From Hamiltosporidium tvaerminnensis FI-OER-3-3 (lineage: Eukaryota; Fungi; Microsporidia), in NCBI GenBank assembly GCA_022605425.2, contig JAKIMF020000005.1, forward strand, positions 372,001 through 436,000: a DNA stretch of 64,000 nt, in the 5' to 3' direction. A program made the translations under genes and the position numbers. Shown here piece after piece: positions 32,018 through 54,927 of this stretch; within the stretch, counting starts at the first letter, position 1, and each line of letters opens with the position of its first letter. The notes below the pieces were generated by a model that was given only the letters and a program-made list of their open reading frames with translations, searched no databases and was not told the DNA's origin.

Positions 32018-32130
32018 TTTTATTGGTCAAATAATTGTAAATGAATTATAATTTATGAAAAATCTTAACTAAATATACTTTTAAGGAGTCGTAACGTATT
32101 ATACGTTAAAATATATTTTAAAAACTATAA
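32018..32130 (+). promoter_or_regulatory. Shared promoter of secreted RAEL-motif gene 1
   Basis: ATTGG 32022-26, AAGGAG 32083-88, palindrome TAACGTAT-T-ATACGTTA 32092-32108, TATAA 32126-30 (-27..-23). Confidence 0.7.
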
Positions 32131-32152: not shown

Positions 32153-32629
32153 ATGGAGATTTTCTACAAAATAATAGCTTTGGCTTTCTTTCTTCTGAAT
32201 AAAATTGATACAGCTGTTGTTGAAACCGGTACAGCCACTCCTGTGGTTACATCTGCCGATACAGCTACAGCCATTCCTACGGCTACAGCCACACCTACAG
32301 CAGTTTCAGAGAAAAAAGAAGAAAATACGGCTAATCCAGAAGGACTTAGTGCAAATCCAACTACAGCGCAAATCGGGAATACTTTGGATGGTAAAAATGC
32401 AATCAAAGAAGGAAATTCTACCACAAGCAAAAACGCTACACTCGGTAGCAATGAAACCTGTCCTGAGAATAACGGAACAAGTCATGACTCCTCTAAAAAG
32501 AAAAACGAAAAATCGAATCATCACAACGATTCTGCGGATACAAATGGTAAAAACGATCGTAGTAGTAAAGATGATAAAAATGTACAACGCGCTACATTTA
32601 AAAGAGCGGAATTAACTTTAATAAGTTAA
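32153..32629 (+). CDS. Small secreted Thr/Ala/Ser/Asn-rich protein with C-terminal ATFKRAELTLIS motif
   Basis: Hydrophobic N-terminus, GC content above background, C-terminal motif shared with the ORFs at 42974 and 52370. Confidence 0.85.
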   Translation: MEIFYKIIALAFFLLNKIDTAVVETGTATPVVTSADTATAIPTATATPTAVSEKKEENTANPEGLSANPTTAQIGNTLDGKNAIKEGNSTTSKNATLGSNETCPENNGTSHDSSKKKNEKSNHHNDSADTNGKNDRSSKDDKNVQRATFKRAELTLIS

Positions 32630-33689
32630 AGCAGAAGCTTCACAAATGAAAATTAAAAGTTTAAAAGTTAAAATTTTATTCTATTTTTTAAAAACGAATT
32701 TATATTCACTTTTAAAATAAAAGTTACAACCTAAAATTTTTCCATCCATTGATTGAGAAAGATTTGCAATAAATTATTTTTAATATAAATTTAGCTGAAA
32801 AATATCTTAAAATCAAACGACATATTTTTAATTCTAATTTATGTTTATTTTACATCATAAAGATGTATAATACACTATTTCTATACCATTTTTTATTTCT
32901 AATAGTAAAATATATTCAATAATCTTACTAAAATTATATTTTACATGTCCTTTCTAAACATTTATGTTGCTTAGACTCATGAATGTAAAAATTCATAGAT
33001 TTTTACCTACTAGTTTAATATCAAATAGCTATAAAAATAACCTATTCAATTACTATTTAAATATTTGTTAAAGTAAAAATGGCATTTTCATAGAATATTC
33101 TACCGCCTCGACTGTTTTATTCCCTATTAAATACGGTCTATTAAATTTTTGTTTAAAATTTATTTTAAAATATATCAGTAAGTCTCTATTGTTCAAATAT
33201 TTTTAATCCAAAACGGGCATACAAACTATAATTAAATTTAATTCAAAGCTTAAAAAAACAATATTTTTTTAATCTTAGATTATCCAAAAAATACACTTAA
33301 AATAAAACTTTATCATGTCTAATGCTTCAATTAGCCATTATATTTTTTATAGTTAACAAATATTTTTTTTGTTCAATATACTTTTTATGATATTTTCTAA
33401 TAAATTTTGCTTTTTTATAAACAATCTCGAATAAAAGAAGTTTTAAAAAGTTTGACTACATACTAACTCCAATTATAATAAATATTATAGAAAAAAACAA
33501 GTATAAGCACTTAATGTAAATTTGTTGTTCTATTTTTTTTCTATGTCCTAAACAGAATATTATTAGATGAAGAGAAATACTAGAAGAACAAAAATATAAT
33601 TTTTGAATAAAGTTTTTACCATAGCTACTTAAACAAAATATACAAATAGAAATAATACCTTTCTATCAAAAGTATTTTAACAAACATCT

Positions 33690-33940
33690 ACAAGTAAAAG
33701 CAATAACTGACAGCAAAAAATATAGTAACAGAACATTTGATAATAAAAAAAAAAAAAAAAGATAAATTAATAAATAATAATTTAACATTAAACAATATAG
33801 TTAAAAAACATTTGATAATAAAAGAAATAAAAAAAGATAAATTAATGAATAATAATTTATTATTAAACAATAGAGTTAAAAAACATTTGATAATAAAAGA
33901 AATAAAAAAAAGATAAATTAATGAATAATAATTTAACATT
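33690..33940. repeat. Imperfect tandem repeat (~65-70 bp, ~3 copies)
   Basis: AACATTTGATAATAAAA..AGATAAATTAAT.AATAATAA recurs. Confidence 0.8.
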
Positions 33941-34362
33941 AGATTATGTAAACATGCATAAGTAATATAATCATTATAAAACATTTTTTTATAAATAAAT
34001 TTTAATTTACTTAATGTATTTTTTAGATCATAAATAATTTTGTAAATTTAATTAAATTAAGTTATGATAGAACAATATTCATATCCAATTCACTATGTTT
34101 GTATGAAATATTATTTATATCTGAATTACAGTTTAATATCTTAGAACCATATGTTTTTAACTATAGTATAGATAAAAAAACTAATAAAAATTATTTGTTT
34201 AATAATCACAAATAGATAAAGTAAACAAATAATAAAGATATAGTAGATATAATAAAGATGTCAAAGATAAAATAGTTAAGAAATATAAAATAGCTAAGAA
34301 ATATAAAATAGATTTTGATTTTTAAAAAATTAAATAAAAAACTAACCCTCTCTAACCCTTAT

Positions 34363-34974
34363 ATGTCACCAGAAGAAGAAGAAAAAAATGAAGAAAATCC
34401 ATCGATTTTAAAGTTACACATATACACGTCAAGAAAGTACAAGACGGATGTACTGCAACCACAAAAAGAATTGACCGATGGAAATTTACGTAGTTCATCG
34501 AAATATAAAAAAGAACGTAGAGAAATAGTGAGTTGGTCTGATGAAGAAATAGATGCACTACAAAAAGGTGTTGAAAAATATGGATACGGTAAATGGAAAG
34601 CAATTTTTCTCGATCTCGACTTCAAATTTCATACATCACGAAATCCTTCGGATTTAAAAGATAAATACCGACTACTTACCAAAAAGACATCGTATTATGC
34701 GCTAAAAAAACAAGATTTTGTTGTGGTAGATAATGAATGGAATTATCTTACAGACTCTCTTGGTAAGTATGATGTCTATAAAGAAAAGTTTCCGCATGAT
34801 GCATGTGAAAGAGCAGCTATTTTACACTGTAAAAGTACGTTAGATGGTAGTATTATTAGACTAATGAGTCTTTCTAATCAGTCTGTAATGCATGTGTATG
34901 AGGTGTTTATAATAGAAGAAGGTTGTAATAAATACAAAGTAAGAAAAATATCTACACTTACTCGGTCAACATAG
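34363..34974 (+). CDS. TRF/telobox-type Myb-domain protein with a putative MC1-like C-terminal domain
   Basis: WSDEEIDALQKGVEKYGYGKWKAI..RNPSDLKDKYR; start moved from the TTG at 34315 to ATG 34363, which follows the TAACCC motif. Confidence 0.85.
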   Translation: MSPEEEEKNEENPSILKLHIYTSRKYKTDVLQPQKELTDGNLRSSSKYKKERREIVSWSDEEIDALQKGVEKYGYGKWKAIFLDLDFKFHTSRNPSDLKDKYRLLTKKTSYYALKKQDFVVVDNEWNYLTDSLGKYDVYKEKFPHDACERAAILHCKSTLDGSIIRLMSLSNQSVMHVYEVFIIEEGCNKYKVRKISTLTRST

Positions 34975-35194
34975 CTTTTCAAATTAAAATTTTTATTTTA
35001 ATTTATTTAATTGTAATATATCGTATTGTATAATATTTAAAAGGATTATAATTTATTGTTGAAGAATTATGTTGTTACAATCTATTGAAGTTTTATTCAA
35101 GTGAATTACATTGTTGTTTAATTAGTTATATTGTTAAACCGTTAAAATATTAAACTATAAAGATTAAATCGTTTAAAAAATATTTTTTTTAATG

Positions 35195-35860
35195 AAATTC
35201 TGGTTTAATATGCTTTTCACTCGTTTATTTATATTCTTCTGCCTCTTTAACCTCATACTTTCCTCTTCTAGATCCGAGTCTTTTATACTACTGTCTTTTG
35301 GTTTAGTATAGTTCCCCCATATGAAATAAACGATGTATTATTTCGTGTTTTAAAACATTTAACTCTATATTTCTCGTTACTAGATTGTCATAAAGGGTAT
35401 GTTAGTTCTTCGTATATCCTGCTTTTTAATAATACATAGATGCTCTTTTATAGCTCTCTTTGGCATTTGGTTCTGAATCAAGTTCTCTTCGTCGAACTGA
35501 GAACTTGTTTCGACTGTCTTTTTAAGTACTATTGATTGAATGTATGTCTCTATATTTTTGGGTATTTGTTCTTTTTTGGATATATCATATGGTAATCCAT
35601 CAGAATACTGAGCTGTGTTATCACATAATAAACTATTTTAATATAATTTTATACACAGCCCTCGATAAATAGCTAAGAAACAGTGATTTTTTTGGTTTTG
35701 CAGTTGCAACTGCTCAAGGTGTATCTTATGAAATGATTCGTAGTTTACCGAGAGACATTGTAGTTTTACTTTTATCCAAAACAAACATATCGGGTCTATT
35801 TTTGTGAATTTTTATATCAGTTTTTATCTTGAGGCCCACTCATTTCCGGTGACTCATCCA
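35195..35860 (-). mobile_element. Degenerate RLE non-LTR 3' fragment
   Basis: CTCTTCGTCGAAC..TTGTTTCGACTGTCTT.TTAAGTACTAT is near-identical to ~2250-2300; RPD motif region at ~35790. Confidence 0.8.
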
Positions 35861-35884
35861 TTGCAAATACTAAGTATTTTGTAT

Positions 35885-36670
35885 AAAAAAAACAACTACA
35901 TTTTTTAAAAGAAATGACATGTTTTATATTTTTTTCATGAAATTAACTCGGTCAAATAAATATTTTTTACTTAAAAAAACAACACACTTTTTAAAATAAA
36001 AGCAAGTGTTGTATTTTTTCATGACGTTAAGACGATTTTAAGTTTAAGATAAATAAATTCTTCCCGACACTCCATTGGTATTCCCTACGATACCCAAATA
36101 TAAAAAACTTTCATCCAAAATGGGCGTCACGCCAATTAAAAGGCGTGCTATTCGCATTAAGTTCGTGATATGGAATGTATCGTAGGTCAAAACCCACCTG
36201 AGCGCACTCAAAACTATGCAGCAATTTAACTTATGTTAGAATTTGGAAACATGAAATTTTCTAGCTATAATATATCTTGGCGACTTACATGGAAATCATC
36301 AAGATAGTGCAAAGTCATATCCACAAGCATAACCTGCTACTTAGCTTTCCTAAATTTAAAGTTTTTTTATTTTTTTCACAGGCGCTAAGTCTTCTAACCT
36401 GAGTGAGCAAAGCCAGGTTAGATACTTTACATAGAAATTAACTACAAATTCAACAGCGGTCTGCAATTTAGCGACATAAAAAAATACAAAATAAATTTTT
36501 AGAAAATAGTCCGCCATTTCTTTAATTCTTTCTCTTCATACAAAATCCATGGAACAACCGAAATTCTAATGTGGTTTTATTTCTACTAAAAATCCAAAAA
36601 GTGATCTTCACATCAATTTCATGTCTTCATTGCCACCAAAGACTTTAAATTGTGGTTATCCTTCCTCCAT
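35885..36670 (-). repeat. Dispersed repeat family A copy with duplicated 3' end
   Basis: GCGCTAAGTCTTCTAACCTGAGTGAGCAAAGC and TGTGGTTATCCTTCCTCCA are reverse complements of family A blocks. Confidence 0.85.
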
Positions 36671-36711
36671 CTTAATAAATAGAAGCATAAATATTTGTAA
36701 AATATATTTTT

Positions 36712-37680
36712 AATAGAGGAGGATACCAAAACTAAAGACTTTTAGGCAATCATTTGGTACACATTATGTCAAATTCCTCATTTAGATTTTAAGTAGAATT
36801 AAAACCATAGTAAATTTTAGGTCGTTACATGGTAATTTATATATCGAGGATGATTTGTATGAATGATGAAAATTTTTCTACAAAGTTTTCTTGTATTTTT
36901 TATGTCATGGGATTAGAAACCACGATTTAAATTGAAGGTAATGTATTTAAAGGCATGGAGACCTAGCTTTACTCTCACAGGTTAGAATAATTAACGCCTA
37001 GAAGCCACAAAAACCCTTTATTTATAACGACATTCTACCAAGTCCTATGTTCTTGTTGGTATTACATTTCAACGTCTATGTAGATTTTATATAAGTCGCC
37101 GAGATATATCTTTTCCAAGAAGTATATTCGGTTGGGTAGGTGTAGACTGGTTAGGAACGTTACTGATCCCGAAGGAGTCCAAGATAAGTTTCAACCTGCA
37201 ATTAAACACCGATTTACCCACCAAGCCGTGCGAAAAACTGGCTTGGTGAATTCTTTGCTTGTCGTAAGCGGGGACTAAAGGAAATTGGTCCTCCAGGCTG
37301 GAGTTAGGCGAAGGGCTAACAACCCACCCACTAAAACCACCTTGTTAATAAACCCAAAAAAGTAAACGAACCCACTAAGAAAAGACCGTTGGGCGGCATT
37401 ACTGAGGGAGGGCAAGGCTCTTGCAGAGCTTTAGTACCGAAAATGAATGAATTAAAGACCGATAATGAATATTAACGAGCATCAGGCAATTAACCTATCC
37501 TATTTAATGGGTATAAGCCTCTTTGCATGAAAAGCTGCGGAGTAAATGTATAATTGAGGATAAAGATGGAATATCAACGGAGCAGTTATTTATGTTAAAT
37601 CATTGGCAAGTGCAAATCATGAAATAAATGTAGTACATGCCACTTTTTTTCAAACTATGTGATATTTATGCAATAAAAAA
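36712..37680 (+). repeat. Dispersed repeat family A copy interrupted by a family B insertion
   Basis: GAGGAGGATACC start; family A similarity resumes after 37463. Confidence 0.75.
37214..37449 (+). mobile_element. RTE-derived short element (family B) with 14-bp TSD
   Basis: TSD AATTAAACACCGAT (37200-13) / AATTAAAGACCGAT (37450-63); core GCTTGTCGTAAG..GACTAAAGG..TGGTCCTCCAGG..GGGCTAACAACCC; TGAA tail. Confidence 0.85.
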
Positions 37681-37710
37681 TAAATTTACCGTTCCTATTT
37701 GATAATTAAT

Positions 37711-37969
37711 CATTTCTCTGATACCCTTTCATACTTTTAATTTGCTTCGGTTTCATAATTTACCTATATTTCCTACCCCAATCTAATCTTCATTTCTCTG
37801 CTACCCTTTCATACTTTTAATTTGCTTCGGTTTCATAATTTACCTATATTTCCTACCCCCATCTAATCTTCATTTCTCTGCTACCCTTTCATACTTTTAA
37901 TTTGCTTCGGTTTCATAATTTACCTATATTTCCTACCCCCATCTAATCTTCATTTCTCTGCTACCCTTT
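37711..37969. repeat. 80-bp tandem repeat x3.2 upstream of SmF
   Basis: CATTTCTCTG units start at 37711, 37791, 37871 and 37951. Confidence 0.95.
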
Positions 37970-38003
37970 ACTATTATTCTTTTGTATTTTTAACCCTTTA
38001 TTA

Positions 38004-38252
38004 ATGGACATTTTAATAAAACCAGATAAAGAAAATCCTAAACAATTTTTAGCAAGAAATATTGGAAAAAACATAACAGTAAATTTAAAATGGGGTCAAG
38101 AATATACTGGTATACTTATAAGTGTAGATGAATATTTTAATTTACATCTTAAAAACTGTAAAGAAAAAGAAGGAGATGTAATAAAAGGAGATGTTGGGGA
38201 AATAGTTATACGGTGTAATAATGTAAGGTACATTGCTGAACATAATTTGTAA
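38004..38252 (+). CDS. SNRPF: Small nuclear ribonucleoprotein F (SmF)
   Basis: NPKQFL..GKNITVNLKWGQEYTGILISVDEYFNLHL..GEIVIRCNNV; TAACCC upstream. Confidence 0.92.
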   Translation: MDILIKPDKENPKQFLARNIGKNITVNLKWGQEYTGILISVDEYFNLHLKNCKEKEGDVIKGDVGEIVIRCNNVRYIAEHNL

Positions 38253-38259
38253 AAGAAAA

Positions 38260-38495
38260 TTAAAATATTATATTTTTTAATGGTAAAGTCAAAGGAAGAA
38301 TAAGAAATAATTTTTAACAGGAAATATATTATTAAAATATTATATTTTTTAATGGTAAAGTCAAAGGAAGAATAAGAAATAATTTTTAACAGGAAATATA
38401 TTATTAAAATATTATATTTTTTAATGGTAAAGTCAAAGGAAGAATAAGAAATAATTTGTAAAAGGAAATATATTATTAAAATATTATATTTTTTG
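38260..38495. repeat. ~72-bp tandem repeat x3 downstream of SmF
   Basis: AATGGTAAAGTCAAAGGAAGAATAAGAAATAATTT occurs 3 times. Confidence 0.93.
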
Positions 38496-38646
38496 TTTGG
38501 AAAGATTGTAAGAAGATTTAGAAATAATTTGGAAAATAAAAATTATAATTTAATACTATGTTTTTGAAAAGATGAAAATAAAAATTGAATTAAAAAACAA
38601 AAAAAGTAATTTATTAATAATAATATATTTGTAAATTCCTGTCTAT

Positions 38647-38799
38647 TTATAAATACTTTAATAATTCTTCTAATTCTATTTTTGTAATGTCATTTAAATC
38701 TTCTTCATTATCATCTAAAAAATTATAAATAAATTTCTGTGCCTCGTCTGTTGATATCTTTTTAGAAGTGATAAGTTCAAAACTTATAGATTTATCCAT
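38647..38799 (-). CDS. 50-aa protein not in the ORF track, resembling RNA polymerase I subunit A14
   Basis: MDKSISFELITSKKISTDEAQKFIYNFLDDNEEDLNDITKIELEELLKYL*; TACCC motif 8-12 nt upstream of ATG, like the neighbouring genes. Confidence 0.7.
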   Translation of the reverse strand: MDKSISFELITSKKISTDEAQKFIYNFLDDNEEDLNDITKIELEELLKYL

Positions 38800-41700
38800 A
38801 AAGAGAGGGTAAAAACATTATTTTTATAATATATCTTAAAATGAATCCGACAAATATCATCTGACTTTGTTTATTAGAAATAAAAAAAGGTAGAAAGATA
38901 AAAAAATTTTACAATTTATTTAAAAAGAATATATTTTTAACAAAATATTAACAATTATTAAAAATAAAAATTTCTTATAATTTATATTCAAAACTTTACT
39001 ACTTCATTTACTACTATGTTAAGTGTAATAATAGATATTACTTTTAAATTATAATTTTCTAATATATTATAGATTATCTTCTATGTTTAAAACTGATTAA
39101 TATTGTTTTTAAAGATATTAAATGTTGTATTAACAAATTATAGGTTATAATCAAGTTTATTATACTGTCAGTGATAGCTTATACAACATTATATTGTGTA
39201 CGTTGAAGATATATTCAAAAATATACTTTTTATAAATATTTATTTATTACACGAGTCAATACAAAACTATATTATAATCTTGTTTAATTTTACTTTTCAG
39301 TTTATAAATCTATTGAAATAATTTAATTTAAAATATTTTCTTTAGATTTATAAACTACAAAGTAAAATACAATGTGTATTCTTCCATTGTAATTATATTT
39401 TATTGAGCTATTTTTAAGCTTTACTTATATAAAAAAGTCCTCAATAAAAGTTTAAAATGTATGAATAGGTTTGTGGTTTTATTTGAAATGATATTAAATT
39501 AATAGAAAACGTTGTATTTTTTAAAACTGTTTAATTCTATTATTTGATATTAGAAAGAGAAGCTAAAAATGCTTGGTATTAAAAATGAATGAAGTATTAG
39601 ATGTAAGCTATGTTGATATTTCCTCATATATGATCGTATATTGCATTAGTATTAATATTGTTTATTTCTTTACATTTTCCGATTCAGTCTAATTAAAAAG
39701 ATGTTCGGTTTTTAATGGATTTTTAAAAAGCGTGTATTCTTTGTTTTTTCTGATTAGATTAAGCAAAAAGTAAAACCTATTTTAAATTTAAAATATCCAT
39801 TTCTTATATATTCTTATTTGCTGACAAACCATCTATACGACTAAACATAAGATTTATTACAATTTTAATTTTTAGAATCTTGCTAATTTTGTTCGAATAG
39901 TTTATTTACTATCATAAAACTTAAGAGTGAGAAGGAAAATACTTGTATATAAATCAATATTAATTAAATCAAATCGAATTATTATAGTTATATATATTTA
40001 CAATCGAAATATCAAAGTATAATGTTGAATATATTATGATATTGTAAGGAGCATGTCATATTCTAGATTAAATTCAAAGGTTTGTTAAATACAGGTTCAT
40101 CAAATATAATCAATCTATACATCACATATTAATTCATTACATTAAAAAAATACCATATATTTTAAGATATTGCTTTGGTTCTAGTTGAATAGAAAGCAAA
40201 ACAATCTATTCTCTTCGCATTTATACATTAAATAAACTCATAAATGTAAGAATTACCGGCTTATTTGATGATATGTTCAAGAGAAATCTTTTTTTGATAT
40301 TTTTACTTATATTCAGAAAAAACGCCACGTATAATATGCATCATCTATTTATACCAAATGATAGTTTTTTTACAAAAAAAAGTTCGATTTTATTGGAAGA
40401 TCTGGAGATAGTTGTTCTTTAAGATATGGGTTTTTCTCTGTCTAAATTCTCTTAGATATATTTTACAAGCGCCATACTTTAAAAAACCCAGTAAAAAATT
40501 ATAATAACTGAGTTATAGTTTGATTCAAAGAGTATTTGATTTACATCTACAAAAAATTATAATCTTTTAAATTTATTCTTCTAATAATTCCTTTGTGTAA
40601 TATTTTTAATTTAAAATATGCAACGCATTTTGATTATTTTGGGTTCAATACATTCAATTTTTCACTTAAGAATTATCAAAAACTGCATATCTTTTTATCC
40701 AGTGCTTTTTTCAGTGTACTTTGTACGATTTTTATATGAATTCCATTTAATTACACCTTTTATATTTTTTACTTCGTTTATTGTGAAGTCAGATATTTTC
40801 TTTATTTAGTAATATTTTCGGTTTTTTTAATAGTATTGGTTAACTATTTGTTTACTGAGTTAAAAAAAGGTAGACTTGGTATTTGTATAATCCCAGAAGA
40901 TATTAATTACATCTTTTCAGAACAAAACATAACATTTGTGCTGAGAAATGTAGTAAGTTATTAATATTGAATCATTAAAAATTATTATTTAAACATTTTT
41001 GAAGAGTTGTAGGTTTAATTTTAATAAAAATATAAATTTTCTAATTCATAATTGATCTTCAACGATCAATATTTCCTAATTCATAATTTAGGCTTATGAA
41101 AAAGCAATGTCCATCTTAAATAAAGTTTTTATTTTCTAATTTATAAATACAGTTGATGATGTTTGTAATCGTGTTTTATAGCTAGATATTTTTTAAGAAA
41201 GCTATATGATTATGTATTATGTTCAGATCATTATAAAAGTATCTATCTCTAATAAATACACCAAAGATCTTTCTTTGGTTATAGATTCTGGATTTTAAAA
41301 ACTGTGAATTATGTATAATAGAAAACCAACAATTTTCTTTAGTCTACCGATTGCTTACTATATTGATATGTCGGTATTTACTGTGAGATAGATAATAAAA
41401 TACATCCCATCTATTCGATGAGAACTTCTTATGTTTCTTAATTCATTTTCTGTATTAAATTCTTTTGAATTTACATGAAGTCTTCATCAAAAGAAAATAA
41501 GTTTATTTTCATGTATATGAATAAATTCACACACCTTTCAACCTAAAAAGCTTTCATTCTTTGTTTCTAATAATTTTGTTTTATTATGTACTTATTTAGT
41601 TTTTATTTTTAGCAATATAGGTCATCTAAAGTCTTGGAATTTGATAATTCGGTGGAAGTAGAAATGAAAATTGTCCCGTTTGAATTGCTTATTGATTCGG

Positions 41701-42973
41701 ATTTTTTAAAATTGGTAAATAATAATTTGCAATTGTTAAACCCTACGGTTTACCGCTGTATTTGTCTATGTTTCAAACTTTGAATATCGTTTTCATCAAA
41801 AACTCTTGCGCTCGAAGTATAAATAATCTACTAGCTTGTCTAGAGGTTTCAAAGTCCGTACAAATAGTGCTCTATCGATTTTATATGGCTCTTTGGTTTA
41901 TAAACTTTATTGAGCAAAAAATATAACGAGAATGTTGTTGATCGCCGACAAAATTAACTTTTAATTTATTTCATTATTTAAATATTTTTTCACAAAAAAA
42001 CAAAGATTCTAGAATAACCTTCATATATTTAAATTTAGAAATACTCTAGCTTCTTGAGCTGTTTTAAATCAATAGTCAATTCAAAATAAAAAGATTCAGA
42101 AATATTATAATTTTTTGTTTAAAATTTGACCTATTAGGCAACTTTTCATAGCTAAAAGCTTATATCGATAAATTTTATATATTACATACATTATATTCAA
42201 CTAAGAATCTACTGATATATCATTAAAATTCGAAATTAAAAATGTAAATCTAAATGTTTTATTATTGTTGTTTATTGTATAATTTAAGAAAGAGTTGAAA
42301 CAGATTTATTAAACAAAAAAATGTTTTTCAATTCCGAGGAATAAATGTTAATATTTGCTTTTTTATACCTTTTTGCAAGTATTTATTAATTAATATATCT
42401 TTCTATTAGTTTACAAACAATAACACTTCGTTCTATTTATGTGTACTTAACTGATTTGTCCTAAAAAACCCTCAGTTATTAGCCTAATACTGCCATGATT
42501 TTTCGATTATAATTTTTATTGGTTTTTTTTCGTTTTTCTAAAAATTTGGTTTTTCAGTACCTAAAACACGGATTAGGATTTAAAAAAAAGCCTATTTTTA
42601 GAATCTTCTAAAAAATCTAAAATATATAATTAGATATTTATCAATATTGATTTTAGCTCTAACATTTTAAACAATCATGATTATTTTAAGTTTAGTTAAT
42701 TATAAAAATATTATTGGTTTGGATCAGATATATTATTTATATTATTATAACGGATATAATCTTATGAACTAAATACTTATACTTCTGTCTAATATTAAAA
42801 CCCAAAATTTCAAGTTACGCAGTCTTCCACATATAAAATAATCAATTAGTCTTGTAAAAAATTCTAATATTTGTTTCCTAATTTTTACGCGCTTCGTTTC
42901 AAAGTATAATTAATTTAACGGATTTTTAACATATAAAAATAAAATATATCAATTAAACATTATTTATTTATAT

Positions 42974-43243
42974 TTAAGCATATAAAGTCAACTCGGCACG
43001 TCTAAAATGCGCGGTTACGGCACTACCAGACATACCTTCTTTCATTATTGCACTTGAATTACCTGAAGCAGACGTTCCTCCTGTACCGTTAGCACCACTC
43101 GTACCATTAGCACCACCTGTACTATTACCTTCTTTTGTACTTGAACTCTCTTTTTTACTGCTACTACTCTTACTAGGTTCTGCATATACAATATTAATAA
43201 CACACAAAAGTATGATTAATAAAATATGATAAATTTTCTGCAT
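42974..43243 (-). CDS. Small secreted Ser/Gly-rich protein with C-terminal AHFRRAELTLYA motif
   Basis: Signal peptide MQKIYHILLIILLCVINIVYA; clear paralogue of 52370..52690. Confidence 0.88.
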   Translation of the reverse strand: MQKIYHILLIILLCVINIVYAEPSKSSSSKKESSSTKEGNSTGGANGTSGANGTGGTSASGNSSAIMKEGMSGSAVTAHFRRAELTLYA

Positions 43244-43265
43244 GACCTCTCGTCTACAGACATAT

Positions 43266-43480
43266 TTATACTTTATTTTTTGCTGGAAAAACGTATTACG
43301 TTTTTTTACTCCTTTATTTTTAATAAAATATAATAAAATATAATAAAATGAATAAATTAATAATTATATTTCATATCAAATTTTATTTTTGTTATCTGGC
43401 CAATTAAGCTTATTAAATTTTGTTTTATCTAAGGTTTATTGTAAAATTATCAAATTAAATAATTTTATTGACCAATAAAA
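43266..43480 (-). promoter_or_regulatory. Shared promoter of secreted RAEL-motif gene 2
   Basis: TATAA at -27..-23, palindrome AAAAACGTA-T-TACGTTTTT 43287-43305, AAGGAG at -71..-66, CCAAT at 43400 and 43472. Confidence 0.7.
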
Positions 43481-45099
43481 TGTAATATAATACACTATAA
43501 TATAAAAAATCTTTATTTGTTCTTTTACAAAATTTTAATTCTGTTGATATCAGTTAGTATAACTGATTAATATGAATTACAATGTTGATATGAAGTTGCA
43601 ATTGTAATTTAAGTTTTATCTTCACGAAGCATAGTAATTCGTTAGTTTAATAAACAGATAATTTACCTCATTCTAGGATTCTTTTATGTTTAATTTATTA
43701 ATTGCTATCTTTTTTTAAATATTAAATAGTATCGAACGAGATTTTAATGATCACAAAAGTTTTTAATAATTAAAAAACAAGATTTCTGTAAATTATGTGT
43801 TTATTTAATCGATTATATATCTTCAAAAAATACACAATGTCTTCTTGATGTAACGTGCATACCAGTAATAATTTATACATGAAATATTAATTTCATATTC
43901 TAGTTTCTGTTCTCATAACTGCGATAGAAGAATCTTTTTAGTTTAGCAAATTATAAGTACCGCGAATTATACAAAAATGGTCCATTTTTTATTTTTAATA
44001 TTGAGTTTGATTTATAATAAGATGACCACAGAACGTTTAGATTGTAGAGTTCAACTTAAGTTTCTAGCTAAAAAAACATAGGAAACCACCTGATACTCTA
44101 AAATTAGGTTTTTTCATTTAAATATGTATTTTAATAAAGCAATTAAATATATATCAGCACCTCTAGATTCCGTTGAATTGTCAAATTTAGAATAAATTCA
44201 TGTTTTCCATAGTTAAAACATCTTTCCTTGTTTAAATAAAGAATTTAAGTCAAAGATAAAAGTTTAATCGTATAAATTAAAAAATCACTTCTAAATTTAC
44301 AATTATGAATGCTTAAGAAAGTCGGGTGGAATTTAATCCTTTGAAAACTTTATCCATAGGTTGAATAAAAATTACAATTAATATCTAAAACACAACAAGG
44401 TAAAATGTATACCGAATTATAGCAATATAGATAACATGAACTCATATAAGTCTCTTAGATCTGATAATATTCTTTTATCCAAAAGAAGATTTAAGAATAA
44501 TTTTTTTAGCTAAAAAAAGTTTGTTTTATATAATAAGCGCGGGGAGATGTAAAATTTAACGGAAATTTTTGTCAAACAAGCGAAAATTTTAGGGTTAAGC
44601 ATTATCTGCTGCAATAGCACATAAAGAATAATTTTTTAGTATTTATATAGTCAAAAACAGAAAACTAAATATAAAATGTTTATCGTGTCATATTTAATAC
44701 TGTGATTGTGGTTTGATTCATAAATAAGTAAATTAAATATATTATCGTTAAGATACGTGATTATCCTCTAATTTGACATAAAAGCCTTTTATTAATTAAT
44801 ACAATTCGATTTGAATGTAACAAAACATCACATTAGACGGTTAATGCATTACTTTATTCAGTGCCATAAACCATTAATTTATATTGTGTTTAAACATATT
44901 TCAGATAATCTTTGTTTGTTAAACGTATTTTTTAACTAAGATTGCGATAATTCTATCTAAAATATTAGATAAGAAAAAAGATACAAATTCAGTTGAAATT
45001 TATTGGCCTTTCGATACTTATTATTGTTTATTCAATAGAAGTACCATCTTTCTATAAACAATCTAAAAGTTATATTTATTTCATGACATTAACCAGTTC

Positions 45100-45660
45100 T
45101 AGGTTTTACATTAATAATTATTCTGCAAAATATTATCGCCATCTCTTAGCTAAGCACATCAAGAATCTTTCCCTCATAAATTTATAATGGCCATATAATA
45201 AGCTGCGAAACTATCTAAAGTTCTTACTTTTGTTCGCTTGGTGTGTGATTGACGAGATATTAATTTCGAAATTTCGGAGGCGCCAGAGTATTCTCATTTG
45301 ACAAAAATCCTGTTGGTATAATATCTAGTGAAACTGTATTTTGAAAAGATACATTCAGTGTCTTCAATGTTAATATGGGATATAAACATGTATTAGCTCT
45401 ACTTAACCCTCTTGGATTTAAAAAAGATACGTTTTTCTGTATCAATTAGCCTCCAAGTCTTCTAGCCAAAGTGAGCAACACTAGATTTATATGCTTTTAC
45501 ATGAAAATTATTTCCAAATTATTCATGGTTTACAATATAAGTACAAATGAAGCTCTAGATGGCTTTATGATGAACTTAAATTCTTTGTAAATCTTTCTTA
45601 TTGTACAATTCTCAGTAAAAACACTGGCAATGCAAGGAATTTTAATTTAATAAATAACCA
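45100..45660 (-). repeat. Degenerate dispersed repeat family A copy
   Basis: AAGTCTTCTAGCCAAAGTGAGCAA..ATGCTTTTACATG block near 45455-45505; boundaries approximate. Confidence 0.6.
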
Positions 45661-46914
45661 GCAAATATTCTAAAAACCGGTTAAAATTAATCATTTCGAA
45701 ACAGATGGTTTTCATTTAGCTATCCTACTCCATAAAAAAAACAGAATAATATAAACATGTAAAATAAAAATTATTTTCTTATCAAGAAAATTAAACACAA
45801 TAATTAATTTATACAAACCTTTTTCTTTTAGGACATCTTAAAGATTAATTTTTATAGAAATATGCGGACAAATGTTTATAACTAGATTTATTATTAAAGA
45901 ATTAAGTTTATATTAACTATACATATTCAAATATAAATCATGAAGAAATTGTTGCAAAATTATATAAAAAATAGCTTATAATTATCATAAATATTCTATA
46001 AAAAGGAAATTATTTGTAAGACGAAGAAAGAAAATTTATTTTAATATTTTTGTTATTTATCTTAAATTTTTTAAATAAAAAAACAGATCTAATTTGAATA
46101 TTTTAATGTTAAGTTTTTCAAATGTATTTTTTATTGATCCGTAACTGTAATTATTAGAGAAAATATACGTTTTACGAATTAAATTATTTATCATATCAAA
46201 TATTTTAAACTTCGTATGTAGAGTAAAAGTAGAAAATTAGACATAACAGTATATTTATTAAAGAAAACGACTTTGAGTCTAAATATTTCGATTGAGTTGA
46301 TTTCGTTAGAATTCATCATAAATACATTTTTTTAAAAATAAATTTTTCTAAATTAAAATCTTTATTACTTTCAAAACAAAATATTGAATTTTAAACAACC
46401 CAGAATCTCAAAGTATAAAAATTTTATAATATAATCATAAATTATTCTATTTTTATTTGTAATCACTTCTATAAATAGAAAAAATAAAAATATTCTAACC
46501 AGAATTAAAAAATCAAATCAAATGGTTTTGAAATTGATTTTATTTTTAGAGTACCAATGTGTAAATATTTGAATTTAATACGTCGATTGAGTAATATTAA
46601 TATTTTTAGAATATAAATAATTTATTTACTTTTTTTATAATATAAATATTTTTTCTATAAATCTGTTTACCTTCTTTTTGAGATAAGTATTTTTTCAATA
46701 AATTTATTTGCTAGTTTATGAAAAGAAAAAAAATTTGATAAATAAAAGTATAATTATTTATCTATAAATTTTTAATCGTAACAAATTAAAAAATAAGTCT
46801 ATAAATTCTTAAAAAAACCAAAAGATATGTAATTGATTACCAACAATAAACGATAAAATATGTTTGAAAACAAATAATAAATAGATTAAAATGAAATAAT
46901 ATATTTCTAAAATA

Positions 46915-47750
46915 TAAAGCCGTGGATCATCTAGCAACTCGATGTGAAAACTGCTAGTCCATGTCTTTATCTGACGGCATAATGAACATTCCAGATGCCT
47001 ATACCTCCTTCTCTCAAATAGATATTAGTTTAAGTCTACAAAACAGAGTAGGAGCTTTCGGTTCATGAAATTCTTTAAAACAAGCATGTCTAAATAACAG
47101 TGAATACCAGGATAAAAACTGATTTCAAATTCGGTGTAATAGGCTAGATATATTTATTTTAGATAAAACGAAAAATAAGATAAAACTCATTGAAGTAGGA
47201 ATCACTTTCCAAGATTCACTTCAAATAGTTGAAACTGAAAACACTTAGGAAGTATGACTTTCTAGCCAATGAGCTGGGTCTTATTTATAAGTTTAGTGTC
47301 GAGATTATCTCTTATGTGATGACCTGGGACGGTATTGTGACAAAATACCATAAATCTCATCTTAAAAGACCAGAAGTACCCATGAATGTAGACCCATACA
47401 TTCCGTCTATACTACCTAAGCAGATGACAGTCGAATCAATTTTCTTTGATCAACTACGAGGACTTAGGTTGAGACCCAATGCCGAAGAATTATGGGAGAG
47501 AGAGCTCAATGGATGTTATTGAGAGAGCCGAGATGCATGTGGAACCAACAACTCATTTAAAACAAGCGAGTAAAGATAAAATGGTGTTAAACATTTAAAA
47601 ATAACAAATATTGCACCCATTATTTCAGAAGGAGGAACTGACCAAACACATAAATGAAGAGTCGGATTTAGAGGACGAAACGATAGTGGTTAAAGAGGTA
47701 AAAGGAGGTTTATAAAAGCTATAAAGAAATTTTTAATCCAGAATTTTATT
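46915..47750 (+). mobile_element. RLE non-LTR retrotransposon 3' fragment (end of zinc knuckle plus endonuclease), disrupted
   Basis: VDHLATRC..RHNE..; LDIFILDKTKNKIKLIEVGIT; RKYDFLANELGLIYKFSVEIISYVMTWDG. Confidence 0.85.
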
Positions 47751-47864
47751 AGCTAAAAATTTTAAAATATAAATGATTGTTTCCTCAAAGGGATAAACCT
47801 TCTTCAAAATAAATAATAAATTTGAGTGAAATATCATATTTTAGAAGAATACATTAAATAAAGT

Positions 47865-48476
47865 TTAATTTTTGTTTTTAATCCTAGAATCCAAAAATAT
47901 AACATAATCATCTTTTAGTTCTTTTTGTATGCTTTGATCAGGACAACATACATCTTTAAGAATTTCATTTTTTGGTGGAATGAAAAAGTAAATAGAATTA
48001 ACTGTATTTAAATATGAAATAGAAACAGAAATTCTTTCTTTTGGTGGTTTTGGAGAATCATTGACATATATAAACATTTCTTTTTTGGTAATATTTTTCG
48101 AATTAGGGAATATTGAAGCAATATGACCATCTTCTCCCACACCCAAAAAGCAGACATTTATGGGTTCAAGGATAGAAATATAATCTTCTATAGCCTTTTC
48201 TGGACAGATTTTAGTGTTTATAGGATAAATCAAAGCATCAGTACTCTTTAAAAATTCTGCATCGAAAAAATTCAAATCACTTTCTTGTTGAGAGATTCGC
48301 TCATCAGCAAAATATATTTTCCATTTCGTTGTTTTAATATTTTTAAAATTTATATTTTTCAATATCGTAAGTATTGAGCCACCTGATATCATTAATTTAA
48401 GGTCTTTATTGTCAAATTTCCTTAATATTGATTCCATTTCATATACAAAATCTGAAATATAAATTGTACTTGGCAT
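47865..48476 (-). CDS. PGLS: 6-phosphogluconolactonase
   Basis: ISGGS, FADER, LGVGEDGHIASIFP, DSPKPPKERIS. Confidence 0.93.
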   Translation of the reverse strand: MPSTIYISDFVYEMESILRKFDNKDLKLMISGGSILTILKNINFKNIKTTKWKIYFADERISQQESDLNFFDAEFLKSTDALIYPINTKICPEKAIEDYISILEPINVCFLGVGEDGHIASIFPNSKNITKKEMFIYVNDSPKPPKERISVSISYLNTVNSIYFFIPPKNEILKDVCCPDQSIQKELKDDYVIFLDSRIKNKN

Positions 48477-49914
48477 CTCTACGTATGGGATATTAAAATA
48501 TTTATTAAAATATTAAATATATTTATGGATAAAAAAACAAAAATTCGTAGTTTTTTTTGTAAAAATATTTTTGTTTGATATAAATCATTGATTGTTCAAA
48601 CGATAAATAGAAAACATAGTTACTATTTTTTTGTGTAAAAATAATTTTGTTTAAACTAAAGTATTATATAATTTATACGAAGATAAAGTCCAGTAGTTCG
48701 TTTTTTATTGAAAAAAGAAAATTTACTTAGATTTAAGAAAGATTTTATCCTTACGAAACTCTAAACAATATTAATTAATTTACTATTTTTTGTATTCGTC
48801 TTTATTTCTTATACGGATTTAGTTGTTTAAAAAATTATTTTATAGGATTGTAATTCTTTTTATAAGATTATATTTCGCACAACTTGAACCCTTGAAAATT
48901 GTGTATCGATAGTCTATTTTAATTTAGATAGAATCTTTATTTACTCTTTTAATTTTTATTTGAAATACCCCTCTCAATTCTTATTCTATTTATACCATTG
49001 AATCATCTTGGTAAATAAAATATCTCCATCTGAAAATATTATTAATCGGAAAAGCTAAATATAATTTTATAAATTAAAAAATACAAATTTACAGAATATA
49101 AATGAAATAAAATCATTTAGAAATTACATATATTTATAAAATTTTGAAGTTTGATAGTATTCGAAACAAAATGTTGTAATATTTTAATTTTTTATAAAAA
49201 TCCCAAAAAATTAAACTGAAGGTTGGATTTGCGTTTTATACCACTAGTTTCTTTCATAGTGAATAACACATTATCATGAAAAGAAATTTTTATTCCAAAC
49301 TACGTATATTTATATTTATACATGACTAATAACATAACTTATCATTGATTATTATATCTCATCGATATTAGATAATTCGATATAGATAATCTTATAAAGT
49401 AATTGGGGTTTATTTGAACCAATTATATAGCTTCATGATGCCCATTTACAACACTGAATATAACTTATTTGTGTTTTTATTGAACCAGATTATTCATAAA
49501 TTGTAATTTACTTAAAAATAAATTCAGATATTTAATTAGTTATATTAAATTGCCTCTATCGCTCAAGTTATATTTATCCTCATTTTAACTAAAACAATCA
49601 GTTTTTCTTAATGGAATTATAATTTGGTAAATATTGAAAAAAAACGAATTCTTTAAAGTATAATTAGATAACTTTTATACAGAAATAAACATAAAATCGT
49701 TTTTTTTTTCAGATAAATTTCTTGTTAGAAGAAAATCATTTTGAAATACTTTTTTGAAAAATTTTAGACTTTCAAAAGATTGAAAATACATATATGATCA
49801 CTTAAGTAAGTTGGGATTTAAATAATGAGTTCTGATTTATTTTGTCTAGAAAAATCTTAATCGGCAATTATATTTTGTATTTATGTCCCGTAAGCATATT
49901 TAGAAAGTATTTTG

Positions 49915-50143
49915 TCATCCTAGGCACTACAGCCCAGCACGAGCCTTGGCCGTCTTCAGTAATATCACCAACTAGTGCCTTTCCAGTGATTCTGTTTACT
50001 TTTTGGGTTTTGTAACAAGGCGGTTTTAAAGGATGGATTTTTAGGCCACGATCAACCCTAACCAGGAGGACCAGTCCCTTTAGTTGTTTCTTACGACAAG
50101 CAGAGAATACTTTAAGCCAATTCTGTTCTCGACAGGGTGAAAG
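49915..50143 (-). mobile_element. RTE-derived short element (family B)
   Basis: GGCACTACAGCCC..GAGCCTTGGCC tail and CTTACGACAAGCAG core; possible TSD AG(A/G)AAGTATTT at 49902 and 50147. Confidence 0.8.
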
Positions 50144-50310
50144 TAAAGGAAGTATTTAAGAAATCTAGACATTATTATGTAGTTTTTTAGCTAAACGAAA
50201 ATGAAATTTTTCTATTTTAGTCTACAATAAACGTCTATTTTGCCATACACTTAGCCTATATGATTTTACTTTTAAGAAAACATAATAAAATATAGTTATT
50301 AGTGAACATC

Positions 50311-51042
50311 GGGTGGAGAGTGAATAACCTCATAAAAAACCTTCTGCTTGGAAATAAGTGTGTGAAACTGGTGTGAGAATATTATTTGGATTTTTGGTTG
50401 GAAAAACCACACTACATTTTCTGTTGTTCTATAGGAGTTGTTTCGTGGGTGTTGTTATGAGAAAGAGAGGTCTAAGAAATGGAGAAACTTTTTCTACAAA
50501 TCCATTTTGTAGTTTTTTATGTAACTATATTGCCGACCGTAACTGAACATATAGGTAATTGCCATGTAAAAGCATAGAAACCCAACCTTGCTTACTCGGG
50601 TTAGAAGACTTAGCATCTTGGAGCTATAAAAATAAAACTATTAAAAGCCAGGAAAGCTAAGTAGCAGGTTATACCTGTTGGTATGACATTGCACTGTCTA
50701 GGTGGACCCCATGTAAATCACTGAAATATATCTTAGATAGAAGTTTATTGGGTTCAGAAAGGGTAGAGTAAGTGGGAATGCTGCATAGTCTTGGGAGAGC
50801 CCAAGGGGATTCGGTCTTCGATACTACTCCACGAAACGGACATTAACGAACACTGGGCAACCGTATTGCCTATTAATTAGGTTCTACACACCCGGTAGAT
50901 GAAAGGCTTTGGAATGAGAGTATCGCAGGGGTTACTGATAGAGTTTTGGGGTAGCAGTTATTTATGTTAAACCTAGAACTGCATTAATTCCATGAAAACA
51001 AATATAACACTTGCCACTATTTTAAAAAGATGTAATGTTTTT
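50311..51042 (+). repeat. Dispersed repeat family A, best-preserved copy (~730 bp)
   Basis: Collinear with the 30465 copy and with the reverse complements of the 19010 and 35885 copies. Confidence 0.9.
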
Positions 51043-52369
51043 TAGCTAAAGTTATTTATTAGTAAACATTCAGTAAAAAATTAGATAATCTTTAAAATAA
51101 AAATATAAAAATACTCGAAAATGCCTGAAAAGAAATAAACCATAGAATTAAAATTGAAGGTTTTTAATTCAAAAGTTTGCCAATCTCTTGTAATCATATT
51201 TAAAATGCAAATAAAAAAGATAAAAAATTTGTAACCATAACTATTTATATGATTAAAATTAAATTGAAAGTTTTCATAATTATCATGTTTTTTTCGACCA
51301 AAAAACCCGTAGAAGTTTCAAAACAAAAATGAAGAAATAATTTCTTACAAAATTTAAATCCAAGTAATCAGGGAACCAAAAATATACTTTAGAAAAATAT
51401 TTCTACGCATTTCTGCTAAATAATTTTAGAAAATAGTAAAATTTTTATACAGTTATACGTTTTGTTTTATTTATGTTGTGGTTAAACTTTATTGAATGTA
51501 AGCGCCTTAAATTTTATGATATAATCGTATCAATTATGTATATTTTATGTATGATCGTTTAAGTCATAAAAATCATTATTTAATAAAACTTTCTTATAAT
51601 TATTTCTTCATCTTTGTATTTATTGAGTTTATTTATATCTTAACTTAATTTGCACAAATCAGTATATTTTATTATAAACTATCGTGTCGTTAGTATGGAT
51701 TATTAAAGCAACAAAAAAATTAAGAGAAATAGACGATTGTAAAGTAATACTATGTTTTCTTCATATAGTATAAAAAATATAATTAATAATATAAGCCAAA
51801 GTAGATTTTCAAATAAAAATTTTACTTCTCTCAGGTTTATCTTACCTTGATATTATTTTTTTTTATTTTTTTCTAAAATCTTATTCTTAGATTTTCGGAA
51901 TATTTTATAATTTTCTAGCTTTTTATTCGAAGAACTTATTTAAACAATTATTTATAGAGCTTGAAAAAAGAATCATCTAAGTTTTATTTCATTGATTTTT
52001 TTAAAGTTTAGGTAGCTTCTTTGCTCATCATATTGTTCCCTCTAGTAATTTAGAGAATAGAAAGTGGAAGAAAACATTGGCTTCTGATAAATTTATTTAG
52101 AAAGAACTCGTACTTTTTGTTGTAGTTCCTTTTCAAAATAATATTTTATCCAAATAAATATTCTCGAAAAGCTTTAAGAAATGTTATTGTTTTTAGTGCA
52201 AAATCTTGAGACATCTGTCACGAGAAGAAGCTCAAATTTAATGTAATTTTGATTTTAATCTTATATTTCGCCTATGATTTTAATTAATATTTGAAAAAAT
52301 ATGTGAGAATTATGACGAAAAATTAGAAAGAAATAGTAAAAAGTAATACACAAATCTATTTATTGAGCT

Positions 52370-52690
52370 TTATGCATATAGAATTAGTTCTGCTCGACTA
52401 AAATTTGCTTTTGTTGCATTTCCAGCTCCGCCTTCGCTTGAAATTCCTCCAATTCCTCCAATTCCACCTATAACCGGATTTGCTGCGCCCGTAGCATTAC
52501 CCTCGGCTGAAGTACTGTTGCTCGATGTAGCGTTATCACCCGTAGTACTATTAGTTCCCGAAGCAGCGTCTTTTTCAGATGTCTTTGATTCACTAGAAGA
52601 ACTTTTATCACTGCTCTTGTCTGGAGTAGCAAAAACAATATTTATAACACATAAGAATATGAATAGAAAAACGCGACAAATTTTCTGCAT
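52370..52690 (-). CDS. Small secreted Ser/Gly/Thr-rich protein with C-terminal ANFSRAELILYA motif
   Basis: Signal peptide MQKICRVFLFIFLCVINIVFA; paralogue of 42974..43243. Confidence 0.88.
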   Translation of the reverse strand: MQKICRVFLFIFLCVINIVFATPDKSSDKSSSSESKTSEKDAASGTNSTTGDNATSSNSTSAEGNATGAANPVIGGIGGIGGISSEGGAGNATKANFSRAELILYA

Positions 52691-52712: not shown

Positions 52713-52912
52713 TTATACTTTATTTTTTTTTTGAAAAAACGTATAATGTTTTTTAGCTCCTTTATTTTCCCTTAAAATTATAAAATGAATGAATTGATAA
52801 TTCCATTTCATATCAATATTTTTCTTATCTAGCCAATTAGACTTTTGAATACCGTTATTTTGTAATGTTTTCTTTACAAAACCTTCCAAATATTTTTCTT
52901 CGTGTCCAATAA
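52713..52912 (-). promoter_or_regulatory. Shared promoter of secreted RAEL-motif gene 3
   Basis: TATAA at -27..-23, imperfect palindrome AAAAAACGT-ATA-ATGTTTTTT 52734-54, AAGGAG at -72..-67, CCAAT at 52833 and 52906. Confidence 0.7.
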
Positions 52913-54689
52913 AGAAAATTCAGGATTTATTTGTTTATAAAAAATCTCATTTATTCTTTAAAAAATACAATAATTTTTTATAGTGTTTGGTATATCATAT
53001 TATAGTACACACGACCAGATATGATTAAATAATACCTTTTTTAGAAAATAAATTATTGAATTAAGTTTATTGAAAATTTTTAAAGGATTATCATATTTTA
53101 ATCTTATACAATCCTACTATTTATTTTAAATTCTATTATTATGACAAATACTACTATTTATAGCTAAAAAACCAAAGTTTTAAATTTGAAATCGCTTCCA
53201 TTATTAAAATTAAGTACTTCTAACCACTTTCTTTATGGTATATAGTGATAAAAAATATAATTTTAAATCCTGAATTTAAAAACAAGATAGCTAAATACTC
53301 TAAAAAGTATATTGACCCATATCTTATGAAAAATTCATCGCATTTGCCTGAAGAGTCGAATGATTAGGTTTATTTAAAAAAGTTGTGGATAAAAAAACCG
53401 AAATCAAAGTATCGACTCAAAATACAGAACAGAACTCAAATATAAATATACCAAATAAATAGGAAAAGAGAGGAGGTATAATAAACCAAGCAAAAACACA
53501 GAGTAAACTAATAAAACATTAAAAAAATTGTTTTTTTTTATATTTCCAATTTAAAAATAAAACCAAGAAAATTATTAAATAAAATAAAAAACTGTGTACA
53601 AATAACAATTAAATGCTTTAAAATATAAATTGATTAAAATATTTCAATAAATATTTTTCTTTATACAGAAACGACTTTCTTATAATTAAAATATTAAAAG
53701 ATAATAATTTACTTAAATATTTAAAAATTATCTGCAAATAAATATAAAATAAACACTTAAAAATATGGACTTGTTCTAATATTATTTATATTTGAATTTA
53801 CACATTTTTTTTAGCGACACCATATTTTATATCTGTTTTATTGTCATTTATATTTAATTCTTCGTAATTCTGTAAAATCAACGCTTTAATTGGATGATTT
53901 AATTAACAAATATTTTGTCTAAAAGTTCCTTTTTAGATTCTAAATTTCTTGTATTTATCATTTTGAAAAGGGATTGGTTGTCATCTATTTATATATAGAA
54001 GAAATTACCTGCATAGTTATAATTTTTGATATTTGATTCAAAAGTTGTAAAAGAATATCTGAACGTTCAAAAAGAAAAAATAACAATTTTTATAATCTAT
54101 AATTTAACATATAAGCTTATATAAATGTATATTTCCCTTGTATAGAGCACGGTTTAGGATTTAATGTGATACTAATAAGCTTTTTATAAATTTTTTTAAC
54201 AAAAATATTTGTTCACAAACAGCTATAAATATGCCATACTTTATTTACTAAGAAAATATCTTTCATGGTATTTCATTTTAAAATATCTAAAAATTATTAA
54301 AAAAAAATTATTTTGACTATATTGTGTCTGCCATATCAAATCTACCTCTAAAGAATATATTTGAGAAAGATTGTAAAACCTTTGCTATTTCGAAGCCAAT
54401 TTTTAAACTTCAAAATTTTTGAATTAATTCTTAAGTTGTTTCGATTACTTAAAACTGCTATTTCGAAACCAATTTTTAAACTTAAAAATCTATGAATTAA
54501 TTCTTAAGTTGTTTCGATTACTTAAAAAATAATTTATTTAAATATTTTTTAATAATTTCAGTATAAAAAATTACTTTATCAAGTTCCTTACAATAAGTCT
54601 TCTTGCAGTATTTTATCAAGGTTGTTTATTAATTAAACTATGGAAGCTTGAATATTTCGCAGGGTTATATTTATTAATAGCTACTCTCT

Positions 54690-54927
54690 TTCGCACCATG
54701 TCGGGAGCAGAATTGGCTTGGTGTATTCTCTGCTTGTCGTAAGAGGCGACTAAAAGGGACTGATCCTTCATGTTGGGGTTGGGCGTAGGGCCAACAACCC
54801 ACCTTTTAAAACTAACTGTTACGAAACCCAATAAGTAAAAAAATCCACTGGAAAAAATACCGGTGACCGGTGTTACTAAGAGAGGCCAAGGCTCGCTCAA
54901 GGCTGTAGTGCCAAAGATGAATCAATG
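54690..54927 (+). mobile_element. RTE-derived short element (family B) with 14-bp TSD
   Basis: AATAGCTACTCTCT at 54676-89 and 54928-41; GCTTGTCGTAAGAGGCGACTAAAAGGG core; GAGGCCAAGGC..GGCTGTAGTGCC tail. Confidence 0.9.

Follow-up and report, generated by a model that had tools for sequence, protein, structure and literature searches.

Most secreted proteins of microsporidia are orphans, as illustrated by the 335 lineage-specific secreted proteins of unknown function in Edhazardia aedis (PMC4435813). Here, we analyse a stretch of 64,000 nucleotides (nt; 'the window') from Hamiltosporidium tvaerminnensis FI-OER-3-3, a microsporidian parasite of the water flea Daphnia magna (contig JAKIMF020000005.1, positions 372,001 to 436,000), in which three small genes encode secreted-type proteins that all end in a similar tail of 12 residues. 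With three genes, all from a single genus, this trio is a variant of a familiar kind of protein, the orphan secreted proteins of microsporidia: like those of E. aedis, its members have a putative signal peptide, carry no Pfam domain, are so far restricted to one genus and form a small paralog family. Unlike these, however, they are almost wholly disordered and combine a selected terminal motif of 12 residues with an array of sequons for N-glycosylation.

Several better characterized systems share part of this layout. The spore-wall proteins (SWPs) EnP2/SWP3 and SWP1 and the polar-tube protein (PTP) PTP1 are glycosylated and contain S/T/G-rich regions, with proteins of Encephalitozoon being known only as O-mannosylated. 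The trio resembles these proteins in its predicted secretion and in low-complexity S/T/G-rich regions suited to glycosylation, but it does not match them in sequence, has neither a Cys-rich part nor a glycosylphosphatidylinositol (GPI) or hydrophobic anchor, is much smaller and is dominated by N-sequons. Precursors of the plant CLE/CEP type, fungal alpha-factor and Kex2-processed repeat proteins likewise join a signal peptide and a variable spacer to a conserved C-terminal peptide of about 12 residues; in the trio, however, there is no motif similarity, no conserved dibasic site and no detected kexin, and each putative precursor would carry one peptide only, behind a sequon-rich spacer. Finally, in KDEL-type signals, such as the REEL of the H. 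tvaerminnensis BiP, an R-x-E-L core is likewise found close to the C-terminus of a protein with a signal peptide, but in the trio extra invariant A, F and L residues accompany this core, and since RAEL is followed by four more residues in all three proteins, a terminal KDEL-type signal can be dismissed.

The C-terminal tail of the trio

Gene 1 (32153..32629, forward strand) encodes 158 amino acids (aa), with a signal-peptide-like N-terminus whose cleavage site near residue 20 is ambiguous, a disordered linker that is first T/A/P-rich and then N/S/K/D-rich, and the tail ATFKRAELTLIS (32591..32626). Genes 2 (42974..43243) and 3 (52370..52690) both lie on the reverse strand and encode 89 and 106 aa, respectively; each has a predicted signal peptide, ending after residue 21 (VYA before EP in gene 2, VFA before TP in gene 3), an S/G/T/N linker and the tail, i.e. 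AHFRRAELTLYA (42977..43012) in gene 2 and ANFSRAELILYA (52373..52408) in gene 3. Judged by a heuristic rather than by a trained predictor, all three N-termini have a basic n-region and an h-region with a Kyte–Doolittle (KD) value of 3.3–3.9, and A-x-A-type cleavage sites are clear in genes 2 and 3. Within the window, these three open reading frames (ORFs) are the only ones in which a hydrophobic N-terminus precedes a low-complexity body of polar residues. The coordinates, strands, hydrophobic N-termini, low-complexity linkers and 12-residue ends given in the original prediction, which had been made from the sequence of this window, all hold.

The ORFs are intact and have also been called elsewhere. 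Among independent assemblies, those of H. tvaerminnensis as well as H. magnivora contain genes 1 and 2, gene 3 is found in a second assembly of H. tvaerminnensis, and gene 2 is called on a chromosome-level contig of 1,464,916 bp, too. The annotation of the chromosome-level H. tvaerminnensis assembly drew on Iso-Seq (PMC10542269), which is no more than an indirect hint that gene 2 may be expressed. None of the indexed RNA runs searched with the stretch contains it.

The tail follows the consensus A-x-F-x-R-A-E-L-x-L-x-[SA]-COOH. In a six-frame scan of the window, RAEL occurs in three places only, all of them tails of the trio. In the genome searched (21.64 Mb, 17 contigs), the codon pattern F.RAEL.[ILFM]..stop has exactly three exact matches, all in this window, as compared with a chance expectation of approximately 0.001 per window and 0.4 per genome; a chance match was rejected as the origin of the shared tail. 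None of the one-mismatch matches to this pattern is the tail of a signal-peptide ORF, and protein searches of the H. tvaerminnensis genome revealed no further member. The genome-wide search for the tail that had been proposed at the outset therefore yields the trio and no more in this genome. The three copies had been called dispersed, which describes their local spacing but not their place in the genome, where all three sit in one cluster of 20.5 kb with no other copy at this stringency. As the motif occurs three times genome-wide and always within these 20.5 kb, the genes represent a local paralog trio rather than carriers of a genome-wide signal, and a general export motif, which would not be confined to three proteins, was rejected.

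An important question is whether the tail has been kept for its protein sequence or is simply what remains of a duplication. The seven invariant residues are encoded by differing synonymous codons at five, five and six of the seven positions in the three gene pairs. Among the paralogs, the proportion of synonymous differences (pS) in the tail is 0.73–0.91 and that of non-synonymous differences (pN) 0.11–0.34, with the pN rising to 0.44–0.89 in the 12 codons directly upstream. Synonymous sites are thus close to saturation and the duplications old, yet the protein sequence of the tail, rather than its DNA, has been kept under purifying selection, in agreement with the earlier view of the tail as the selected unit. 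A functionless residue of recent duplication would fit the local paralogy of the genes and the 75% DNA identity of genes 2 and 3 over promoter and signal peptide, i.e. their 5' ends, which makes these two DNA paralogs. With saturated synonymous sites, preserved residues and a gene 1 coding region that has no significant DNA similarity to gene 2 or 3, the codon comparison largely refutes this explanation, and we give it hardly any credence. The distance from motif to stop codon is constant, while the linker ranges from 56 to 125 aa. Moreover, in four assemblies representing two species, allelic changes are either synonymous or affect linker residues (N58S, T59A, a one-Ser deletion and A51G), and the sole change in a tail is synonymous.

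Promoter and sequon arrays of the trio

Besides the tail, which the original prediction had singled out, the promoter and the sequon array are shared too, and gene 1, which was said to share little else with genes 2 and 3 at the protein level, has more in common with them than its C-terminus. In all three genes, the composite element AAGGAG-N12-ATACGTT is found about 70–47 nt upstream and a TATAA box at -27. The upstream regions comprise 32083..32130 on the forward strand for gene 1 (element at 32083-32107) and, on the reverse strand, 43266..43314 for gene 2 (element at 43290-43314) and 52713..52762 for gene 3 (element at 52738-52762). In the entire genome, the composite element has four exact matches, i.e. 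the trio and one inside a coding sequence resembling the largest subunit of RNA polymerase. The known microsporidian CCC motif before the ATG (PMC2803860) is present just upstream of nine out of nine housekeeping genes in the window but absent from all three trio genes, including gene 1, and a TATA promoter subclass has been described in Trachipleistophora (PMC3486916). By these sequence criteria, the trio is probably co-regulated and co-expressed from a shared non-housekeeping TATA-type promoter. The pattern ATACGTT..TATAA, taken as the mark of a wider regulon, is not enriched genome-wide (61 matches versus 102 in the control).

In the window and at other sampled loci, genes more generally fall into two promoter classes, with housekeeping genes having CCC before the ATG and many lineage-specific secreted genes having TATAA at about -25 to -31 without CCC. 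One further gene with AAGGAG upstream of its TATA box lies approximately 15 kb before the window (G000:C14:357256-358352); its product has a signal peptide and, between G/W-rich ends, long MQGQGQ and QHQxQFQ repeats and is a candidate for a spore-wall structural protein. The gene is apparently split by a frameshift near its start, which may be an assembly error or real.

The linkers, too, are related by more than composition. Each contains an array of four N-x-S/T sequons, located at 32414..32479 (forward strand) in gene 1 (N88, N94, N100 and N107; spacing 6, 6, 7), at 43052..43126 (reverse) in gene 2 (N40, N46, N52 and N62; spacing 6, 6, 10) and at 52490..52552 (reverse) in gene 3 (N47, N53, N58 and N65; spacing 6, 5, 7). 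The gene 1 array begins within a KEGNST that is shared with gene 2 but encoded by different codons, although the alignment of the gene 1 linker to the others, taken alone, is weak (shuffle p 0.04 and 0.12). In gene 2, the array accounts for all four Asn of the mature protein, and gene 3 has two further sequons, N91 and N96, the latter within the tail. In total, gene 1 has five sequons, gene 2 four (of four Asn) and gene 3 six (of seven Asn). These 15 sequons compare with 7.3 in shuffled sequences (p=0.001, a value that is inflated because the sequons partly stem from a six-residue repeat, the gene 2 array being in part an 18-nt tandem repeat), whereas sequons are not enriched in other sampled secreted-type ORFs (ratio 0.92).

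Whether such sequons could be used depends on the parasite's own machinery. Encephalitozoon is reported to be without N-glycosylation, with STT3 and Alg7 absent. The H. tvaerminnensis genome, however, contains an intact STT3 gene (G000:C4:299741-302545), encoding 934 aa with the WWDYG motif and a long low-complexity insertion, as well as a gene for an Alg7-family transferase (PF00953; G000:C1:226301-226759), and both STT3 and Alg7 are also listed for Nematocida and Mitosporidium (10.1101/209106). Judging from these genes, the large-genome microsporidian H. tvaerminnensis appears to retain N-glycosylation, and because both are present, N-glycosylation of the trio linkers is plausible. The trio thus provides concrete candidate substrates for N-glycosylation in a microsporidian that appears to have kept STT3 and Alg7.

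Possible roles of the tail

Searches for relatives led back to the same genus. A word-index protein search gave only Hamiltosporidium hypothetical proteins, and a HMMER profile search of 1.84 billion representatives added to Hamiltosporidium proteins just one compositional false positive without the tail. Pfam produced only sub-threshold compositional matches, the ESM Atlas nothing at or above 0.9, and sequence and fold searches of the PDB no match. Viral contigs gave no match; a metagenome scan for the tail pattern found, among the matches listed, only chance matches and ends of bacterial barrels; and no such tail motif is described in the literature searched. Comparing neighbourhoods via orthologs of the adjacent 6-phosphogluconolactonase gene (in Anncaliia, Spraguea, Astathelohania and three Logan contigs) showed neither conservation nor a tail motif, and for the Myb neighbour there were no usable orthologs. 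As had been suspected, no described family accommodates the trio, and no SWP or PTP sequence or profile matches it. A 12-residue motif alone lies below the thresholds of these searches, which therefore do not show that the tail is absent outside Hamiltosporidium. The family thus seems to be undescribed and found in this genus only, by searches insensitive to a lone 12-residue motif. The tiny size of the family and its restriction to one genus so far limit its impact. Nevertheless, microsporidian secreted proteins being mostly orphans, a selected peptide of 12 residues is an experimental handle in a well-studied Daphnia-parasite system.

By its sequence, the tail does not belong to a common class of C-terminal signals. 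A GPI signal can be dismissed, given a grand average of hydropathy (GRAVY) of -0.16 to 0.56 and just 4–5 hydrophobic terminal residues, as opposed to the ~15–20 needed after the omega site. The fourth residue from the C-terminus is T, T and I in genes 1, 2 and 3, respectively, where a CaaX box would require Cys, and a bacterial beta-signal is excluded by the lack of a barrel domain and by ends in S, A and A without a terminal aromatic residue. On metagenome contigs, bacterial proteins of the outer-membrane type end in a near-identical A.F.RAEL.[FL].F, which is their last strand, i.e. a convergent analogue rather than a homolog.

The original prediction had suggested a terminal beta-strand, which the structural data do not establish. 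AlphaFold2 predicts coil at low confidence for full-length gene 2, with a disordered linker, and, for the final 30 residues of gene 1, a helix with a predicted local distance difference test (pLDDT) of 86–88 over the tail; hydrophobic moments and propensities do not prefer strand over helix. We consider it quite improbable that the tail self-polymerizes as a cross-beta zipper to form fibrils or tubules with a glycan fringe, comparable to the electron-dense secretions seen around the sporonts of related microsporidia. Such assembly would be in line with last five residues that are hydrophobic and beta-prone (beta propensity, Pb, 1.22–1.30), with similar strings serving, by analogy only, as the last strand of bacterial outer-membrane barrels, and with the tubular exospore secretions of the related Neoflabelliforma (PMC9911548) and the abundant secretions of Edhazardia (PMC4435813). 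Yet the gene 1 tail is predicted as a helix, helix propensity equals or exceeds strand propensity over the 12-mer, and the sequon NFS within the gene 3 tail would hinder packing, if used. Conservation takes in five consecutive positions (R-A-E-L plus the flanking F and L) and is not limited to one face; the conserved alternating face switches at R-A-E-L. This pattern is better accounted for by a peptide that sits enclosed within a binding groove or an active site than by a one-faced amphipathic element, and the tail may thus be a buried bound peptide.

Another reading would make the proteins precursors that release a short bioactive peptide, either AEL[TI]Lxx or the entire 12-mer. Signal peptide, variable spacer and conserved C-terminal peptide are the classic layout for this, as in plant CLE/CEP or fungal pheromones, the Arg in the tail is invariant and subtilisins are encoded in the genome. 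The earlier suggestion of Kex2-type release, however, finds no support in the dibasic pair, which is not conserved (KR, RR and SR in genes 1, 2 and 3), or in the enzyme: the kexin P-domain PF01483 has no match in the genome, although a very divergent kexin could escape this search, three S8 subtilisin genes are without a P-domain, and the membrane-anchored subtilisin that was tested has its closest relatives in the proteinase K family. Kexins appear to have been discarded or to be degenerate in microsporidia (PMC5371821). A non-kexin protease would have to make the cut. Moreover, the spacer does not look disposable, since it bears a conserved sequon array, and there is neither a Gly for amidation nor a CaaX Cys, so that we rate release of a peptide as rather unlikely. 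The membrane-anchored proteinase-K-type subtilisin itself is encoded, together with a divergently transcribed 222-aa ORF with a hydrophobic start, in an inverted duplicate pair (G000:C13:201822-202469 and 232815-233462); the catalytic-serine motif GTS.A is matched in neither subtilisin copy.

Alternatively, the tail could act as a sorting signal inside the parasite's own secretory pathway, for instance as a masked KDEL-type signal in which trimming of the last four residues exposes RAEL. Masked retrieval signals are known from exotoxin A (REDLK) and from the killer toxin K28 (HDELR). The BiP of this organism, the Hsp70 of the endoplasmic reticulum (ER), ends in REEL rather than HDEL or KDEL (G000:C14:1325065-1326963), to which RAEL is close, and the variants KAEL and HAEL function as retrieval signals in human cells (PMC2140024). 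The known masked signals lose only one basic residue, however, whereas in each of the three proteins four residues separate RAEL from the terminus; masking would not explain the invariant A, F and final L; and a general signal would be expected on many proteins, yet only three carry the tail. We regard this role as very unlikely. A relaxed pattern has 35 matches versus 23 in the control.

A partner for the tail could also be found in the host. As microsporidia develop in the host cytoplasm and many of their lineage-specific secreted proteins are candidate effectors (PMC4435813), the trio might be secreted into the Daphnia cell, where the tail, acting as a linear motif, would bind to a protein of the host. 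RAEL resembles the RxxL core of degrons, and the trio's promoter class is common to other lineage-specific secreted ORFs. On the other hand, the match to a destruction box (D-box) is limited to this RxxL core, dense N-glycan sequons better suit surface or luminal proteins, and a tail that is invariant across isolates and both species, in only three copies, does not show the diversification of an arms race. A host-directed role therefore seems unlikely, if worth keeping in mind.

The reading we favour, with a probability of roughly 45%, is that the trio consists of co-regulated secreted proteins, disordered and N-glycosylated, which a docking motif at the C-terminus holds on the surface of the parasite or within its secretions. 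Old Hamiltosporidium-specific local paralogs sharing one non-housekeeping TATA-type promoter would be expressed together, and each product would enter the ER via its signal peptide. Its spaced sequons would be N-glycosylated, probably along with O-mannosylation, to generate a short disordered glycan brush. The tail might then be bound in a groove, provided by one parasite partner or by proteins of its own kind, and so anchor or assemble this brush at the parasite surface, in the forming spore coat or in the episporal secretions. Here, we infer secretion, glycan occupancy, docking and location; the direct observations are real ORFs, selection on the tail, a shared promoter, sequons, STT3 and Alg7-family genes and no detectable kexin. 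Several points weigh against this reading. No homolog of known function was found for the trio, a conserved C-terminal peptide fits processing, sorting and host-effector roles equally well, and the proteins have no Cys, GPI signal or transmembrane segment to tie them to a wall. In addition, the sequon statistics profit from the repeats, and gene 1 alone is without sequon enrichment (p=0.36).

A bolder proposal is that the tail represents a dedicated recognition signal not described before, either a kexin-independent released signalling peptide or a new tag for targeting or assembly, by which N-glycosylated brushes would reach a sporulation structure and of which other microsporidia would have unrecognized variants. 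This we deem rather doubtful. If true, either a released signal or a wider targeting tag would raise the significance of the finding, and a released tail peptide would give a microsporidian its first system of CLE/pheromone-like peptides, with cleavage independent of a kexin.

Genomic surroundings

The trio genes are interleaved with genes for a cyclin, a Myb protein, an Sm protein and 6-phosphogluconolactonase as well as with repeat fragments. An Rfam scan of 31000-64000 gave no match. Between 28000 and 57500, the window contains degenerate dispersed repeats in both orientations (e.g. at 30600-30930, 36190-37340, 45455-45510, 49900-50810 and 54660-54920), and remnants of the ORF of a reverse-transcriptase-like element are present at 2105-2434 and 47229-47522. 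Two AT-rich ORFs of 189 and 175 aa on the reverse strand at 12309-13502, without a Pfam match, are possibly pieces of a decayed gene of a leucine-rich-repeat (LRR)-type family. Finally, an ORF of 50 aa beginning with MDKSISFEL was confirmed on the reverse strand at 38647-38799.

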